A stretch of 64,000 nt of DNA from Setoptus koraiensis (Eukaryota > Animalia > Arthropoda): positions 22,692,001 to 22,756,000 of the forward strand of contig CM106586.1 in assembly GCA_048013815.1 (NCBI GenBank). Reading direction: 5' to 3'. Both the position numbers and the translations under genes were made by a program. Shown here in pieces: positions 5,684 to 64,000 of this stretch. Positions within the stretch are counted from its first letter, which is position 1; each line of letters opens with the position of its first letter. Under the pieces are notes generated by a model that was given only the letters and a program-made list of their open reading frames with translations, was not told the DNA's origin and searched no databases.

Positions 5684-7268
5684 GGCCGCTTGAGACAACA
5701 AAAACAATCGATTTGTTGTTGTGCGTTTGTTTGCCGATAGTTGCTGATAAACTTGTTGCACTTGTTACGCGCTTGCCACTCACAAGTCGAGAGGAAGTGA
5801 CGCAACTCGCCGCTGCCAAACACAGCTGACCGCTGCCAAGCACAGCTGACTGCCGCCGCCGCCGCCAAATCAAACAGACTCGCCCATTTGACTTGCGGCT
5901 ATCGACTGTCCGTTCGCCAGATCGATTGACCAGTGTCCATTGATGTGGCGCTGATGTTTGTCCAGTTGGCTGGACAAACATTGGCTCGCTGCAACGGTCA
6001 GTTGTTTGTCGGACGCATCCCGATGATGAATTGGCTCGGCCGGGTTCGCGCGGCTCGCATCGGCCCGAATCGGCTGCTTGGCTCCGCTCGGCTCCGTTTG
6101 GCCGCGCTCGGCCGGCGCCGGTGGTCAGCGAAATCGGAAATGAGCCGCAGCGCGCCGACCGACAACAAACCCACCGACCGACAGCTCATACGTCAAACAC
6201 TGGCTTACGTAACATGAGTTATGTTGTACTCATGCATCATGCTGCCATGCTAGCCGTGCACAACAATGCAGCGCCAGGCGCATTATAGTAACAGTTGCAT
6301 TATACGGCGGTATGAGTGTTGTTGTTACATAATAGCCGGCGCACATAACATATTAGTCATCATTAGTGCCGCTTGCGTCATTAGGCTGATCGATGGGCGC
6401 GCGTTGCGCCGGCTACCGCGACAGCATGACGACATGCGGTTATTATGTACCTGTTATTCACGCATTATTCACTTGTTATATATTATATATTATGCAATAC
6501 CTGTTATTACATAATAACAGATAACAGATAACATATAACAGATCTGGTGGCGCTGCAAGTTGCGCCGACAGATATGTATTATGTAACGAGCCGCCGCCGC
6601 CACAAACAAGCGCCAGCAACAACCTGTTGCTGCCATAGCAATAGTGTTGCATTTGCAGGCTATTTGCATACCATCCAATCACTAGATAATAGCAATAATA
6701 TCGCAACAAATACCATTCTGTTCACCTGTGGCAGCCAAATATTGTTTGTTGCAATACTATTGCACAGGTGAGCAAAACATTATCACACAGACGAGCAAAA
6801 TATTGTCTGGTCAGCGAGCAGCTTGTTGGCCGGATAAGAGTGTTGCGCCGACACAACGCGGACAAAGCCCGCGACACAGCTGACCGGGTTTGTGCGGCCG
6901 GCGCGTCTTCCGTCCGTTCGGACGCTCCGCTCGGACGCAAACAACCGCTAATCGATCACTCGCCGGCGAGCTCTGCGCGATCTGACAGTCTCATTACGCG
7001 GCCCGCCGCACTCTCAAAACCGCGTCTATCTACACGACGCGTCTATCCCTGACACATCCATGCGAAACCATCAACCGATCCAATCGCTAACGAGTCCCCC
7101 AATCTGTCTATTCCCCGTCTATTACCCGCTGCTATTATCCGATTCAACTCGATTCCGCATTCAACCCGCGCCCGATCCGCATCCATCGACAAACAAACAA
7201 ACAAACAATCACACTCACCGGTCGACTGGCACGTAATGCGAACGATCCAACAACGACAATGACGCAAA

Positions 7269-54408: not shown

Positions 54409-56097
54409 CGCTGGGCAATTGTATGGTTCGTCGTATGGTTATTATCTATCTGTTATTAGCGGGCTATTATTAATTAGTAGTGGCTCGAGTTACAATAGAC
54501 AATTGCAAATGAGTCGCGATCGTTGATAACGGTTTGTTGAGGCCAGTGTCACCTGTGTGAGCGTGTAGCAATTATTCAAAAATAAACAAAACTCTATTCA
54601 CTATGAAAAGAAAGTTCTCTATTATATTATATTGGCTATTATTATATTCGATTGGCTATTGTTATATTTTTCGTCTACTTGTTGTGACGTTCTCTAGTAA
54701 GAATTTTCTTGGTGCTTTCTTGACGTCGCTGTCTTGATGGTATCGTCGTCACTGGTCTTGTGGTAGATGAACAATTAAAAGTGAAAGTGTTTTAAATCTA
54801 CCGAGGATCATTTATATTTTTGTATATATGTGATCGCTTTGGGTTCGAACAAAACATTGATAGCCAACGCGATATTGTCGTCTCATAATTCTCACTGTTG
54901 CTCGCTCAACTGAAGAATTTATCTCTACCTTCATGATAGAATTGATAGAATTGATTCACTCCACTATCTTCTATCACGTGAGTTCTGCCAACTGCAATTA
55001 TACCGCCCTCTATTCTTCGAGATCATATTCTTTTTTATTCTTCCTCTTATAAAAATAATGATAATATGATCATGCAAACTCTCGACAGTAGATCTCATTA
55101 GTTATTGTTACCTTTACATTACTCTTTGGCTCTCATAATTAATATCATTCGTCTGTATCCCGCCCCAAAAACTAATTCGTTGCTGTTGTCGCCGTCGTCG
55201 TCGTCGTCGTCGTTGCCGTCGTGTACTATCCATTCACAAGTTACATTTTTGATGAAAACCCTCACAGGGACACTTCGCGAATCTGGGTAAGAATTCTTTC
55301 AATACAACTCTATCTACAACAATCTTCCGATCTACAATTGAAAAGAGAGAATTGAATATCAAAGGATGATGATAAGGTTCGTGAGTGCAAACTCGTGCAA
55401 ATAATCACCCGCCCACTCATGTCTGACAAGATTTGATTCACTTAGAGTATCTGGTATAGAAAGAACGAGAGTGATACGGTGCAGGAGAGATAACGGTTGG
55501 TTGACATAGGCAGTAAGACAGTTGTTGGTAGAAGAAGAGATCGAGCTAATCACTCGAAGCAATCTAATGCGAAAATTGAATATGATGTTAATGATGAAGT
55601 CAGCGAACATGATGACGAACAGTCGGCTATAAATATAAACACTCTAATTGCATACATGATTGCTCGCGTATTAGTCTTTCTCTAATCGCTTTAGTAACCC
55701 TATTCATTGGTGTTCATCGCAAATTCATGATAATTATTTCCGGACCGGATCTAATTAAAACACACCGTCGAACTGTTTACATGCATAGTTGAAGTCAATG
55801 TTAAGGATCAACTGAAGAGAATGAAACCAAGACACCGAATATTCGCAAAGCTTCTCCTATTGGCAGCAGTTGTGTATCATTGTTTTATACGTACAGGTGT
55901 ACTAAAAACACGTTCTTTTAGTGGGCATGAACACTACAAGTAGAAATTAGTAGTTCAGTACTATTATGCTCAACTTACTCTCGAAAGAACGATTTCTAAG
56001 ATTGAAGTCTTTTATTGTGTTTGTTGTGGTATTGAATATATTTATGCGTACACTAAAATTCGCTCGAAGAAAAGCTAGCAAAAACCAGTTTGACTTC

Positions 56098-58834
56098 TCA
56101 CATCTTGTCGAGGTAAGAGTCTAGGTCAGGAAGAGACTCTTTCAAACCTTTACGCTTTCTAGTATCAATCAGGACTTGATAGGGTTTTGATTTACCATCC
56201 ATGGGGTCACCTGGTAGTACTTGCCAATGATCAAATACACACTGTGGAAAAGCTTGACCACCTGTATTAGATCTGAGGTCGGCTGTAAAACCGAATGATT
56301 CGTTAACTGGAAGATAGGCCTTAACTACGAACATAGGGGTTCCGGTAACTTGAGTCTCCTCGGTAACGTGACCACGACGACGATTGAGCACTCCATAAAT
56401 ACCCCCGACGACAGATTCAGGACACTGAATTTCAACTAAATAGACGGGCTCTAGCAAACGAGGCTCAGCTGTGATCTGACAAGCGTAAAAGCAACGTCTG
56501 GCTGTTGGTATAATTTGACCACCACCACGATGGATCGCATCAGTGTGAAGTGTAACGTCATGAATGTTCCATCTGATTCCACGGCAGTTCTCTTCACAAA
56601 GGACACCCTCTTTAGATGCCCACTGTAGACCTGCTACCATGCTGTCCTTAATTTCGTTCAAGTATTGAACACCCTTAGTAACGTCAACGAGAAGGTTGGG
56701 GCCAGTTGTCTCAGGACCAAAGCACCAAATCTTACGCGAATCGGTTGCGTCCCATTCGTATTTCTCCACTAAGATCTTACCACGATTCTTGGGGTCATCC
56801 TTGACGTTGATGATACCAGAATCAATGTCCTCGGCAAGACCGTCTTGCATTGGCACAGCTTTCATGTAAAGACGATTGTGTTTGTTAGGTGACTTCGACA
56901 GGCACATAATAGATGATTCTTCTGTTACAGTTTCACGGTAAGACACGACGGGATCTGAGGTCTTCAATGGAATCTGTGCATGATCTTCTTCCAAGTCTTT
57001 CAAACAGATCTCAAGATGGAGTTCACCAGCTCCAGCGACGATATGCTCACCACTAGATTCAGTGCTGATTTGTACCATAGGATCGGATTTGGCTAAACGT
57101 TTAAGACCTTCAACTAATTTTGGCAATTCAGCGGGATTTTTGGGTTCAACAGCTACACGGACAACGGGGCTGACACTGAATTTCATGACCTTAAGATTGT
57201 GAGCATCCTTAAAGTTAGAGATGGTTCCTGTCTTGACAAGGTACTGATCTACACCGACAAGACCACAGATGTTACCTGAAGGAACATCTTCGATGGCTTC
57301 AGCAGAACGACCCATCATGAGGACTGTACGTTGAATAGCTTTTTCAGCAAGATCTACTTTTCCACCGGGAACATAGTTGGGTCCCATAATACGGACCTTT
57401 TGACCTGAGGCAACACATCCGGAGAAAACTCTACCGAAGGCGTAGAAACGACCTTTATCAGCTGTCGGTACCATTTTAGACACGTACATCATGAGAGGAC
57501 CATTAGGGTCACAGTTCTTAATGGCGATGGCAGCTTCATCGTCTAGTGGGCCTTGGTACAAGATTTCCATACGGTATCGTTGGGCTGTGACAGGTGATGG
57601 TAAGTGGATGGCTATCATCTGCAACAAAGCCTCACCAGCTGGCCACCAGGTACGCATTACAAGTTTGAGTAAGTCTTTGCCCTCCTTGTCTTTGTCGTCA
57701 CCTTTCAACACTATTCCTAATTTGTTTAGTAGATCTGCTATTTCTTCCTTGTGGTAGTTCATTATTGCGTCGAAAACTTTGAAGATTGGGTCGAGTACGA
57801 AGTGACAGAAGGCGCGCTCAAATCCTTCACCTTGATTCTTTGACCATTTCTTTGTTGCCTTGTTGAAGAAGTTCTCACCCCACAATTTACCCATGAGCTT
57901 TTCTGGGTCAATCTTGAATTTGTCAGCGTAGAACTCAGCAAACTGTTTGAGCGTGAAAGCCCATCCGTGTAGACCACTACCAAAGGCTACGTTACCCTTT
58001 GCCGGGTCGACTTTGATGTCACCCATAGGTCCACTCTCATCGGAGTATGTGGCTATGATAGCGTTGACTGTCTCAACAATACGAGTCAACTTCTGATACA
58101 AGTCTTCCTTACCTAGTTGCAACGTAAGCATAGCCAAGTCCATCTTGTTCATGATGAGAACGGGCTTGATACGCTCAGTGATGGCTTGACGGAGGACGGT
58201 TTCAGTTTGTACACAAACACCTGTTAGCGAAGACAATGTAGAGATTGGGGTTACCAAATAGAAAATATTCTGATAGCAGTCAATGTTGATAGAACCATAG
58301 TCTTACCTGAGACACAGTCGACGACAACCAGAGCACCATCGGTAACACGAAGAGCAGCTGTGACCTCAGATGAGAAGTCAACGTGACCTGGTGAATCAAT
58401 AAGATTGATCAAGAAACCTCGTTCGTCTTTCTCTCGTTGAAATTCTCCTTTGATGTATGGTAAATCGCGTTCGGCCATCTCGAAGTACATGGAAATAGCG
58501 GTAGATTTGATGGTAATACATCTCTCTTGTTCGTCTTTTCTTGTATCAGTAAATCTCATCTCACCGGCTTTAGCGGCGGCGATAATACCGGCTTTGGTAA
58601 CTAAAGCATCGGTCAAAGTGGATTTTCCGTGATCGACGTGGGCTATAACACTCATGTTACGAATGTTCCTCTTCTTGGACATGATGCCACGGATCTCATC
58701 AACTGTAAAGTTCACCTGTGAAAAAGAGGTAAGTTTACATTGTTAGTATTGAAAACGTGAGTGAATTCGCATAGTGCACGACATATTTCTTTATAAGCAC
58801 CGTATGTGAGTATGTTGCATTGATCACTTACCAT
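56098..58834 (-). CDS. eEF2: Eukaryotic translation elongation factor 2, 844 aa; coding exons 58834-58832 (ATG), 58715-58307, 58220-56098
   Basis: [10 protein letters not shown]-terminus, G1 AHVDHGKS, effector [20 protein letters not shown], diphthamide loop [13 protein letters not shown]. Introns are GT-AG and the joined CDS of 2535 nt is in frame. Confidence 0.98.
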
Positions 58835-58857
58835 TTTGATGCTTCTTTTTTATCTAT
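58832..58857 (-). other. 26-nt mini-exon ending in the eEF2 ATG (ATAGATAAAAAAGAAGCATCAAAATG)
   Basis: Bounded by TTATAG and GTAAGT; 21/26 identical to the RpS24 mini-exon. A second AG lies 4 nt downstream in both. Confidence 0.7.
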
Positions 58858-59017
58858 CTATAAGTTCACAATTATTTGCTATGATATAATATATGGATAT
58901 TTATTTAAATTAACCTAATTAAATGAATGTTTGATATGATTTAAGTCAATATTATTGTATAACATGTAGTGCTGGCTTGCAACTGCGTCCAGTCACCAAT
59001 ATGATAAGAAGAAATTC

Positions 59018-59109
59018 GCAATTGAAGTTTCAAGCAACTCACGCTGTTTCCGTTGCACTTACATTTCTCTATTTGCGCATTCCAAATATGACTAGCGCCA
59101 ATTTTGAAC
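59018..59109 (-). promoter_or_regulatory. Left arm of inverted repeat: putative eEF2 promoter and non-coding leader exon with donor CAGC|GTGAGT (intron 59042-58858)
   Basis: Reverse complement aligns to 59337-59430 at about 70/94 identity. Donor is oriented toward eEF2. Matching acceptor TTATAG at 58863-58858. Confidence 0.7.
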
Positions 59110-59336
59110 CACATTTCATCACGTTATTGGCATTAGATCCACTGATGATGCGGGCAGAATTCCACTGTAGCACAGACAAGAAAAGTTCACGAGTGAATGT
59201 CGATGGTGTGCTGAACACACTTGTGTAGAGAATGTTTGTGTGAACTTTGCCGGTATTCACATTCGTGCACATTCATGCACAACATTAAAGTGCAAACATG
59301 CGAGCAGACACACAAACAAAAAATCACTCCAAAGCC

Positions 59337-59430
59337 GTTCGAAATTGGCGCTAGTGCTGCTGGCAATGCGCAAGCAAAGGAACATTAGTGCAGCGGAAGC
59401 AGCGTGAGTCGGACAGTAAACTTGAATTGC
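59337..59430 (+). promoter_or_regulatory. Right arm of inverted repeat: putative RpS24 promoter and non-coding leader exon with donor CAGC|GTGAGT (intron 59404-59561)
   Basis: Inverted homologue of 59018-59109. Donor is oriented toward RpS24. Matching acceptor CCATAG at 59556-59561. Confidence 0.7.
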
Positions 59431-59561
59431 AAACTGCTTCAACATGCCGATAACTCACATGATTTACAGAGTTCTTATTTAATTCGTTTCGAATTTATAA
59501 TATTCTGTTGGATTAATTTAAATTTATCCAGATACTAATTGTAACAATTTCACACCCATAG

Positions 59562-59587
59562 ATAGACAACAAAAAGGAATCAAAATG
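59562..59587 (+). other. 26-nt mini-exon ending in the RpS24 ATG (ATAGACAACAAAAAGGAATCAAAATG)
   Basis: Bounded by CCATAG and GTAAGT; same length as and 21/26 identical to the eEF2 mini-exon. Confidence 0.7.
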
Positions 59588-60086
59588 GTAAGTAGTCAAT
59601 TCAGGGACGAAACATTTCTTCCACCATCGTAGCTCACTCAGGTTCTAATAACTGTTTCTATCGCTGTTTCTCTATCAAAATTACTAGGTCATAAGCTCGT
59701 TGCGAACACGTAAATTTATGACAAATCGTCTCTTATACAGACGTCAGATGGTAGTCGATATATTACATCCAGGAAAAGCTACCGTGTCCAAGAAGGAGGT
59801 TCAAGAAAAACTAGCTAAAATGTACAAAACCACTCCAGATGTTGTCTTCTGTTTTGGATTCAAAACACAATTCGGTGGTGACAAATCATCCGGATTCGCC
59901 CTCATTTATGATAATTTAAAGATGGCCAAGAGATTCGAACCAAGATACAGATTGGTCAAGAATGGTCTTAAAGAAAAGGCTAAGACCGGTAGGAAACAGC
60001 GCAAGGAGCGAAAGAACAGAATGAAGAAGGTTAGAGGTACAGCTAAGGCGAAGATTGGAGCAGGTGCTGCCAAGAAGGCTAAATAA
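59585..60086 (+). CDS. RpS24: 40S ribosomal protein S24 (eS24), 133 aa; coding exons 59585-59587 (ATG) and 59688-60086
   Basis: [30 protein letters not shown]...FGFKTQFGG...[19 protein letters not shown]|GTAAGT donor at 59588 and acceptor TTACTAG at 59681-59687. AATAAA overlaps the stop. Confidence 0.97.
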
Positions 60087-60289
60087 ATAAACAAACTAAA
60101 AATTCAAATCATCGCGAATACATTCACTCTCGTCATCTATTTTTTAGCCACGGCAACTGTCCAGATATACTTTTTTCAACCTCGTACGCTCAAAAACTGC
60201 GCCACTTCATGAGTGACCACGAGGCGTGCTCCATACACGTTTTTTTTTTGTATCAATCCACTCTACGTCTTTAAGATGTTTTGATTTCT

Positions 60290-60760
60290 ATATAATATAC
60301 ATATTATTTATATATTAAATTATTATTATCTATTAGTATATAATTCATCTATAATATTATATTATTTATATGGTATATTTTATATATTATATTAATTATT
60401 ATATGATTATTTTATTATTTATTTATATTATTTTATAAATTACAATGTTACTAAAAATTTAATATACAGATATTTATATATAATTTAAATTATATTATAT
60501 TATATTATGATATTATATATATTTTTTATATATTAAATAATATATTATTTATATTATTATGTATAGATATATATATATTTATATAGTAATATTATATAAT
60601 ATTATATATTTATCTATGTAATATTTATATTATACTGTATATAATCATTATATAGTTTGTTTTTATATATTATTAATTATATATAATATATATTATATAT
60701 ATTATATATTAAATGATATATTTTTAATATAAATTTTTATTAATAATTTCAAATAATTAA
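60290..60760. other. Extremely A/T-rich low-complexity tract
   Basis: Almost exclusively A and T with sparse C/G and no clear period. Confidence 0.85.
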
Positions 60761-60778
60761 CATCCCACCCTACACACT

Positions 60779-63700
60779 ACCAACCCAACACAACAAACAA
60801 CAAACACAAAACAACCCACAAACCACACCCACACCAAAAACAACACACACACCACAACAACACAAACAACACAACCAACAAACACAAACACAACACACAC
60901 CACACACACACCAACCACACACACAAACCAAACCCAACACACACCAAACACCAACAAACCACACACACCAACAACCCAAACCCAAAACAAAACCAACAAA
61001 CCCCCCAACACAACCAACAACACACCCACACAACACAAAAAACAACAACAAAAAACACAAAAAAACACAAAAAACACACAAACACACACACAACCAAACA
61101 CACAACCAACACAACAACCCAACCACAACACCAACACAACCACACAACCCAAACAACAAAAAACAAAACCAACACAACCACCACACAAAACAACACACCC
61201 ACCCAACCAACCAACAACAAAAACACCAACCCACACACAAACCCACAAACCCACACAACACAACAACAAAACAAAACACAAAACAAAACCAAACACAACA
61301 CACAAACCACAACCAAAAACAACAAAACCCACACACACACACACACAACAACACACACAACAAAACCACAAACCAAACCACAAAAACCAACAACCCCCCC
61401 AACAACACACAACACACACCACCACCAAACACAAACCCACAACACACACACCACACACCAACCAAACACACAACACAACACAACAACCAACAAACCAAAA
61501 AACCCAACAAACAACCCACCAAACCAACAAACAAACAAACCACACAACAAAACCACCAACAACAACACACAACAAACACACACAACCAACACCAACAAAC
61601 ACCACACACACCAAACCACACCACACACACAAAAAAAACCACCAAACAACCCAAAAACACAACAACCACACCACACAACCAAACAACAAAAAAAAAAAAA
61701 CAACACCAACCACAAAAAAAAAACAACACACAACCCCACAAACCAACACAAAAAACACCACCACACAACACACACAACAAACCCAACACCCAACAAAAAC
61801 CAACAAACACCCAAAACCACAAAAACAACACACAAAACACAAACAACAACAAACCCAACAAACCACCAACCCACACCAAACCACAAAAACACCAAAAACA
61901 CACCAAAAAAAACCCACCCAACACACACAAAACCACAAACAAACCCAAACCCACACACAACCCAACAACACAACACACAAACAACAACCACCCCACACAC
62001 ACAAAAAACAACCACAACAACCAACACCCCAACCACACCACCCCCAAAAACAACAAACCACACACAACACAACACACCAAACAACAACAACCACACACAA
62101 AAACCAACAACACCAACAAACCACACAACAAAAAACAAAAAACACACCACCAAACAACAACACCACACAAACACCCCAACCCACCCAACCACCAACCAAA
62201 AACAACACCAAACACAACCCAAACAAAACCAAAACAACCAAACACAAAAACCACACAAAAACCCACCAACCACCAAACAAACACCAAACAACAACACCCC
62301 AAACAAAACACAAAACAACAAACAACACAAAAAACACACCAACAACACACCAAACCAACACAACACCCCCCAACACAAACCAAACCACAACACACAACAA
62401 ACCCAACAACAAAAAAACCCACACAACAAACCACAAACCAACCAACCCAAAAACAACAAAAACACCCAACCACAAACAAAACCACCAAAAACAAAAACAA
62501 CCAAAAAAACACCAAACCAACACAACACACACAACAACAAAAACAAACACACAAACACCAACACAACACAACAAACCCACCCAAAAAACCACACCACACA
62601 ACAACAAAAAAACACACAAACACAACACAACAACCAAAACAAACCCACACCACCACAAACAACAACCACCCACAAACCACAAACAACAACACACCACAAA
62701 AAACAAACAACAACACCCACACACAAACCAAACCACACAACCAAACAAAAAAACAAACAAAACAACACCCAAAACCACACACAAAACAAACAAACACAAC
62801 ACACAACACAAAACAAAAACACACAAACACAACACAACAACACACACAAACAAACCCCCACAACCAAACACACAAAAACCACAACACAAAACACACAACA
62901 CCCCAAAACAAACACCCACCCAAACCAAACAACAACACCAACCAACAACCAACAACAACAACACCACCAAACACCACCCACACAACCACAACACAAAAAC
63001 ACCCAAACAACACACCCAACCAAACACAACAAAACACCAACCACACACAACACACACAACACCAAAAAACAAAACACAACCAAAAACAAACAAACACAAA
63101 CACCACCAAAACAACCAAACCACAAAAAACACCACCAACCCAACACAACAACCACAACAACCCCAAACAAACCCAACCCACCCAACACCCCCACCAAACA
63201 CCCACAACACAAACACCCCCAACAAACACCCAACCCAACACAAAAACACACCAAAAACAACACAACCACACACAACCACAAACAACAACACACCAACCAC
63301 CAACAAAAAAAACACACAACCAAAACAACAAAACCCCAAAACACCCAAACCACCAAACCAAACCCACACACCACACACACCCACAAAACCAAAAACACCC
63401 CAACACCCAACAAAACAAACCCCCAACCCACCAACCACCAACACACCAAAAACAACACAAACCCACAAAAAACAAAACAACAACCAACAAACACCAAACA
63501 ACAACCAAAACACACCAACCCACACAACAAAAAACACACAAAACCCCCAAAAAACCAAAACAACACCACAAAAAACACACCCAAAAAAACACCACAAAAC
63601 ACACAAACACACAACACCAACAAACAAACAACACCACCACAAAACCCACAACAACAAAACACAACACACCCCCCAACAACAACCCCCAACAACAACACCA

Positions 63701-64000
63701 CAACACACCAAAAACAAAACAACACACACACAAACCACAACAAAACAAAACCAACCACACAACCACAAAACCCCACAACAAAAACAACACACACACAACC
63801 CAAACCCAAAAAAAAACAAAACACACACAACACACAACAAACCCACCAACCACACAAACCACAAAAAACAAACCAAAAAACAAAAACCAAACCACACCCA
63901 AACAAACAAACCACCAACAAACAAAAAACACAACACAAAACCAACAAACCAACCAAAAACCCACACACAACAAACAAAAACACACAACCAACACACCCCA
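60779..64000. other. A/C-only aperiodic tract, probable raw-read or contig-end artefact
   Basis: I saw no G or T over 3222 nt, and no repeat unit. The 1000+ aa minus-strand ORFs exist only because G/T-only sequence cannot encode a stop codon. Confidence 0.8.

Follow-up and report, generated by a model that had tools for sequence, protein, structure and literature searches.

In a 64-kb stretch of the Setoptus koraiensis genome (the window) the genes for eEF2 (minus strand) and RpS24 (plus strand) lie head-to-head, and their 5' ends are homologous to each other in inverted orientation. The two ATGs are 753 bp apart, in agreement with the distance of about 750 bp given for these two translation genes in an earlier note on this DNA and below the limit of 1 kb for a bidirectional gene pair. 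We read the locus as an old head-to-head pair with a mirror-symmetric bidirectional promoter, in which inverted copies of the whole 5' module passed between the genes, episodically, and give this reading a probability of roughly 0.7. What is directly observed, in the window and in 91 further loci fetched for comparison, is the homology with its limits, the old synteny and an arm phylogeny that is discordant with gene identity.

Read toward its own gene, each side consists of a promoter/leader arm, a putative leader intron, a mini-exon ending in ATG and an intron directly after this ATG (Table 1). Inverted repeats pair 59037-59109 with 59337-59409 (73 nt, 78%) and 58816-58876 with 59543-59603 (61 nt, 75%). 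When the two sides were aligned locally, with gaps and in inverted orientation, the score was 82, as compared to 21.2 ± 2.5 (maximum 32) in 500 dinucleotide shuffles and 23 in the direct-orientation control; the alignment extends from the GTTCRAAATTGG box to 16-18 nt beyond the ATG on each side, and the inverted colinear similarity overall corresponds to a z-score of 20-25. The earlier note had described arms at 59018-59109 and 59337-59430 with about 70/94 identity, a CGGAARCAGC/GTGAGT element in each arm pointing toward its own gene, putative introns of 185 and 158 nt and 26-nt exons identical at 21 of 26 positions. We found 71 identical columns out of 94, both elements, intron lengths that match the coordinates and the same exon count; in the window, ATCAAAATGGTAAGTRRTCAAT occurs only at these two sites. 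The eEF2 arm contains a GTTCAAAATTGGCGCTAG box, a TGCGCA box, an initiator (Inr)-like AGTGCA, an ETS-like CGGAAAC and, at its end, the putative donor CAGC/GTGAGT.

The similarity is unevenly distributed along the module. With 1000 shuffles for each segment, the promoter/leader arm (68 nt) reached z 15.5, a score attained by none of the shuffles, and the ATG mini-exon z 4.2 (1/1000), whereas a colinear global alignment of the leader-intron interior yielded z 3.9-4.6 (0-1/1000). The interior of the post-ATG intron (z 3.2) did not stand out from a coding-exon control (z 3.4), and homology in this region thus rests on a five-sequence alignment, in which it enters the post-ATG intron for ~65-85 nt up to a TCACTCAsGTTyT block (~58746 / 59652). 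Beyond this block the polypyrimidine tract and the acceptor are specific to each gene. The limits of the homology are sharp, at 59110/59336 on the promoter side and inside the post-ATG intron on the other, and the colinear inverted similarity is both significant and discretely bounded. Altogether, homologous inverted modules of ~365 and ~317 nt, with arms that are ~67-78% alike, flank a spacer of ~225 nt.

Copying between the genes is most evident in a sister species represented by the Logan contig L089 (run SRR33927538). L089 is syntenic with L088, a second Logan contig from a sister species, TRM10 lying directly downstream of RpS24 in both. The RpS24 module of L089 is 76% identical to the eEF2 module of the window and 57% identical to the RpS24 module of the window; it carries eEF2-type indels, including a 26-nt block, and agrees with the eEF2 type at 12 of 15 diagnostic sites. 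Its leader-intron interior, a presumably neutral sequence, aligned to the eEF2 intron of the window with a score of 159 (z 54) and to the RpS24 intron with a score of 23 (z 2), while the similarity between the two introns of the window is weak. In a maximum-likelihood tree of the eEF2 (E) and RpS24 (S) arms of the window (W), L088 and L089, (W_S,L088_S) is separated from ((W_E,L089_S)96,L088_E)100, which places L089_S inside the eEF2-type clade with 100% bootstrap support and makes the arm phylogeny discordant with gene identity. The post-ATG intron of L089 is a mosaic that matches both types, with an eEF2-type 5' end and an RpS24-type 3' end, and the switch falls at the block already common to both genes, as expected of homology-guided conversion. 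Judged from these alignments and the tree, L089 shows that whole-module copying between the two genes occurred in this clade. As L089_S is nested within the eEF2 clade, at least two copy or conversion events are indicated, the later one proceeding from eEF2 to RpS24. Together with the arms of L088 described below, the eEF2-type module of L089 supports the earlier proposal of inverted copying of one 5' module, or of its homogenisation through gene conversion.

L088 possesses both arms (score 79, z 22.8). Its identity to the window at third codon positions of RpS24 is 0.80, that of L089 0.835; the RpS24 protein is identical in all three, and 2 of 684 residues distinguish the eEF2 of the window from that of L088. 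When the window is compared to L088, the eEF2 arm is conserved to 90% and the RpS24 arm to 95% over aligned columns, followed by the mini-exons (85-88%), the leader introns (68-80%, with 80% for that of eEF2) and the post-ATG introns (67-71%), whereas the central spacer, at ~51%, is effectively unalignable, indicating that the arms are under constraint and the spacer is not. The RpS24 leader intron of the window is orthologous to that of L088 (z 19.8), not to that of L089 (z 2.1).

The gene pair itself is older than this homology. The genome is that of an eriophyoid mite: the best named match of RpS24 is Fragariocoptes setiger, an eriophyoid mite (79%), and the named EF2 matches are from mites and other chelicerates with up to 82% identity, other EF2 proteins reaching 90%. 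The eriophyoid loci used for comparison are L001-L007, L088, L089, L091, which is essentially the species of L004 and was recovered via cluster members, and L090 from F. setiger. RpS24 and eEF2 are head-to-head in every eriophyoid-like locus fetched (L001-L007, L088, L091 and F. setiger), with ATG-to-ATG distances of 425-822 bp in eight other eriophyoid loci, so that the pair is old within the superfamily. Of 80 further RpS24 loci obtained from metagenomes, not one carries eEF2 upstream or comes from a closer relative; among them, the contig L023 is eriophyoid-like but has too little upstream DNA. In L001-L007 no extended mirror similarity could be aligned (z ≤ 2.4). Hence the arrangement predates the long homology, and we rejected the possibility that the latter is ancestral to the superfamily.

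What the distant relatives share is the motif grammar only, namely a GCGCCAG/GCGCTAG-like box, TGCGCA(TG) and CGGAAR, ordered toward each gene. The GCGC box takes the E2F-like form TTTCGCGCC in L001, the TGCGCA(TG) box is a full GCGCATGCG in L006, and CGGAAR is ETS-like; the factor names E2F, NRF-1 and ETS are our reading of the motifs. A common promoter grammar, as the earlier note had suggested, is thus present in both halves, in the same box order, for eEF2 and RpS24 across eriophyoid mites. F. setiger has inverted arms of its own (L090:5698-5780 and 5808-5890), which are 83 nt long, 77% complementary and 27 nt apart, with TGCGCATG and GCGGAAGTG boxes equally spaced on both sides and the box order of the other loci. 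L006 displays a short mirrored 5' untranslated region (UTR; TCAATCTA...ATGGT, 18 nt, 83%).

The gene models require a tiny first coding exon in both genes. The ATG of the eEF2 mini-exon is needed for the conserved N-terminus MVNFTVDE, coding being resumed at 58715; in RpS24 coding is resumed at 59688 and an in-frame stop codon is found immediately upstream of the exon. The stop codon and the downstream restart of coding in both genes imply that the ATG must be supplied by a tiny upstream exon. Both ATG mini-exons are immediately followed by GTAAGT, and the post-ATG intron is in phase 0 in both genes. Orthologues that lack the intron read ATG-GTC-AAC (eEF2 of L006 and F. setiger) or ATG-ACC-ATA (RpS24 of L001) and confirm this reading, and the introns directly after both ATGs are supported by homology; the upstream leader intron is a prediction. 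The post-ATG intron is patchily distributed among eriophyoid loci, eEF2 being without it in L006 and F. setiger and RpS24 in L001-L003 and F. setiger. An Rfam scan of 55500-60800 at E ≤ 1 returned no match, and a small nucleolar RNA or other known RNA hosted by the shared introns was discarded as an explanation on this ground.

Table 1. Coordinates of the features of the eEF2/RpS24 locus in the window.
Feature	Position	Strand	Observation
eEF2 coding region	56098-58715	-	Open reading frames and 90% identity to EF2 proteins; one more short intron at ~58221-58306
eEF2 intron directly after ATG, 116 nt	58716-58831	-	~58746-58831 still part of the shared module (five-sequence alignment)
eEF2 mini-exon, 26 nt, ending in ATG (58832-58834)	58832-58857	-	21/26 identical to RpS24 mini-exon
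eEF2 putative leader (5' UTR) intron, 185 nt	58858-59042	-	GTGAGT donor and TTATAG acceptor kept in window and L088
eEF2 promoter/leader arm	59043-59110	-	78% identical to RpS24 arm, z 15.5
Central unique spacer, ~225 nt	59111-59335	.	No arm-to-arm similarity (control z 1.0)
RpS24 promoter/leader arm	59336-59403	+	Boxes of the eEF2 arm in matching order, ETS-like CGGAAGC, putative donor CAGC/GTGAGT at end
RpS24 putative leader intron, 158 nt	59404-59561	+	Weak colinear similarity to eEF2 leader intron
RpS24 mini-exon, 26 nt, ending in ATG (59585-59587)	59562-59587	+	21/26 identical to eEF2 mini-exon
RpS24 intron directly after ATG, 100 nt	59588-59687	+	~59588-59652 common with eEF2; remainder RpS24-specific
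RpS24 coding exon to stop codon	59688-60086	+	Pfam Ribosomal_S24e in orthologous calls; 79% identical to F. setiger protein

Three further features of the window lie in or beside the pair. Within the spacer, 59240-59267 (+) resembles, at 20 of 28 positions, the inverted start of the eEF2 coding exon (58688-58715); this match is absent from the L088 spacer and probably due to chance. Downstream of eEF2, 55001-56097 is 88.7% identical to L088, as compared to 51-71% in introns and spacer; it contains no long open reading frame, has no Rfam hit from 55500 on and may represent either a conserved element without coding function or a gene made up of small exons. Directly downstream of RpS24 an AT-rich tract (60289-60745) is followed by a low-complexity array rich in CA/AC that spans at least 3.2 kb (60774-63993). 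Since TRM10 follows RpS24 after only ~260 nt in L088 and L089, this array arose by insertion or expansion in the species of the window only.

In the reading that we favour, the bidirectional promoter would be built from two mirror halves, each with a box resembling GCGCTAG, then TGCGCA(TG) and, nearest to its gene, an ETS-like CGGAAR. The module of one gene would have been copied in inverted orientation over that of the other. The copied stretch would run from the promoter half through a short leader, the leader intron and the ATG mini-exon into the post-ATG intron, of which it would include the first two-thirds. The mechanism may have been intrachromosomal gene conversion or template switching between the inverted halves, which are ~230 nt apart. 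A first event would have taken place before the split of the window and L088 and a second one, from eEF2 into RpS24, in the lineage of L089, the process being episodic. The phase-0 intron right after the ATG of both genes places the junction within an intron, so that nothing but the Met codon is exchanged and both proteins stay unchanged; the position of this junction may be the reason why the swap was tolerated. In all arms an ATG is contained in an ATGCGCA box, from which we conclude that transcription probably starts downstream of it, near the Inr-like AGTGCA, which is invariant and located ~17 nt before the GTGAGT donor. If the putative leader intron is spliced, the resulting 5' UTRs would be ~40 nt long and ~80% alike. 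It is plausible that eEF2 and RpS24 may be co-regulated.

A number of observations weigh against copying as we propose it, or against parts of it. The similarity of the promoter/leader regions may simply reflect an ancient binding-site grammar shared by both halves. Locally, the leader-intron interiors of the window are only weakly similar (z 2.7, reached by 25/1000 shuffles), and those of the two arms of L088 are not significantly similar to each other (z 1.1). In the window and L088, 21 quartet-informative sites follow orthology, 5 concerted evolution and 3 the crossed pairing. As orthologous arms are also closer (73% and 77%) than paralogous ones (66.5% and 68.7%), the copy that created the arms predates the split from L088 and has not been followed by homogenisation since. 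As for the leader intron, L089 is without its TATAG acceptor, and the protein collections searched contained neither RpS24 nor eEF2 of this clade as a spliced full-length product.

The second event is also open to objection, as the L089 contig ends inside the leader and a chimeric contig is formally possible. The eEF2 arm of this species was not recovered: an exact look-up of the 684-residue eEF2 of the window found nothing, and a search with the N-terminal eEF2 exon retrieved L088 only. Speaking against a chimera, the mini-exon region of L089 is strongly diverged, unlike what would be expected of a constrained eEF2 arm. Finally, we lean toward eEF2 as the donor of the first event, for which the clues are short and conflicting, outgroup noncoding DNA being saturated. 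The start of the post-ATG intron is more similar to eEF2 orthologues, whereas the GTTCAAATTTCGCGCCAG box of L001 is located on the RpS24 side at equal distance from the ATG.

We weighed three other explanations. The first is that the module represents a cis-regulatory cassette of the translation apparatus that is also present at other ribosomal protein or elongation factor genes and is kept for common control of transcription and 5' UTR. Ribosomal protein and elongation factor mRNAs, that of eEF2 included, are subject to terminal oligopyrimidine (TOP)/TCT-initiator control in vertebrates and Drosophila. Both genes of the pair belong to the translation machinery, the conservation of their arms between the window and L088 matches that of coding sequence, and their 5' UTRs would be ~80% identical upon splicing of the leader intron. 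However, neither an oligopyrimidine tract nor a TCT initiator is conserved in both arms, and in the window and the 91 loci the arm motifs and the composite TGCGCA-N15-35-CGGAAR are confined to this gene pair. The arm motifs do not recur elsewhere in the window, and among the fetched loci only L088 has them, in both arms; the composite is found only at this pair in the window and its flanks (no other ribosomal protein gene in the searched DNA). A cassette of this kind is unlikely, in our view.

Somewhat less probable still is a scenario without any copying in the lineage of the window, where promoter halves that were symmetric since ancient times are kept alike by purifying selection on binding sites, Kozak sequence and splice signals. 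The matching box order on both sides in distant eriophyoids and F. setiger is what this scenario predicts, and the best-conserved stretches are indeed the boxes, the donor and the TCAAAATG/GTAAGT consensus of Kozak sequence and donor. Moreover, a 12-nt segment between the boxes is deleted in L088_S, and the intron interiors of the window are weakly similar. Selection on sites does not readily account for the colinear similarity of the leader-intron interior or for the sharp ends of the homology, and L001-L007 have the grammar yet no alignable arms. L089 carries a full-length copy of a presumably neutral intron that passed between the genes. The form of the region, two inverted arms around a unique spacer, would suit the terminal inverted repeats of a transposon or miniature inverted-repeat transposable element, or an assembly artefact, but this reading is scarcely credible, given that the arms hold the start codons and splice donors of both genes, occupy the orthologous place in an independent assembly of a sister species, have no Rfam match and are single-copy in the DNA searched, with L088 as their only other occurrence, rather than a dispersed high-copy repeat.

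If inverted copying of the whole module is correct, it departs from the usual view of promoter evolution by point changes and turnover of binding sites, as here the front end of two essential, unrelated and highly expressed genes would be shared by descent. The repeated overwrite in a sister species would provide a natural, datable case of whole-promoter replacement. It would also suggest a role for post-ATG introns in making 5' modules interchangeable and point to a mutational mechanism that is characteristic of highly compact genomes. An eriophyoid genome has been reported to have 83.7% intronless genes and to retain 5' introns preferentially (PMC7738191), which fits the idea that such introns matter here. 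One may speculate further that close head-to-head genes throughout eriophyoid genomes repeatedly overwrite their promoter-leader-start modules by fold-back or template-switch conversion, with post-ATG introns as safe junctions at which unrelated genes exchange front ends while the proteins remain untouched. Such a process could help to account for the retention of 5' introns in these genomes and would leave neighbouring essential genes co-regulated by descent and not by convergent evolution; it is a generalisation on which we would rather bet against than for.

Bidirectional promoters and conversion between inverted repeats are each already well known. A limited literature search found no report of a bidirectional promoter whose halves are sequence-homologous through leader, intron and start codon of unrelated genes and renewed in a sister species. 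With the TOP/TCT regulon the locus shares common 5' cis elements in eEF2 and a ribosomal protein gene; it differs in that no oligopyrimidine initiator was seen to be shared by the two arms, and a TTTCTTCTT run is confined to the eEF2-type intron. Bidirectional promoters of human and mouse housekeeping genes are reported to be enriched for GABPA/ETS, NRF-1, E2F and YY1 sites (PMC4730256). The eEF2/RpS24 promoter resembles them in having divergent genes less than 1 kb apart, no evident TATA box, ETS-like CGGAAR and NRF-1-like (GCGCATGCG / TGCGCA) boxes on both sides and, in L001, the E2F-like GC-rich TTTCGCGCC, but its halves are homologous in sequence, and this homology continues through leader, intron and start codon and ends within the next intron. 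Inverted repeats that evolve in concert through gene conversion have been described in sex-chromosome palindromes (PMC8981503), and inverted pairs of Hsp70 genes and the divergently paired chorion genes of the silkmoth are further cases (PMC4639761). Like these, the eEF2/RpS24 modules point to non-reciprocal copying between close inverted arms and yield arm trees that are discordant with orthology. In contrast to palindromes, Hsp70 and chorion genes, the arms are tiny (~0.3 kb) and only 67-78% alike, conversion appears to be episodic, and the genes that flank them are not paralogues.

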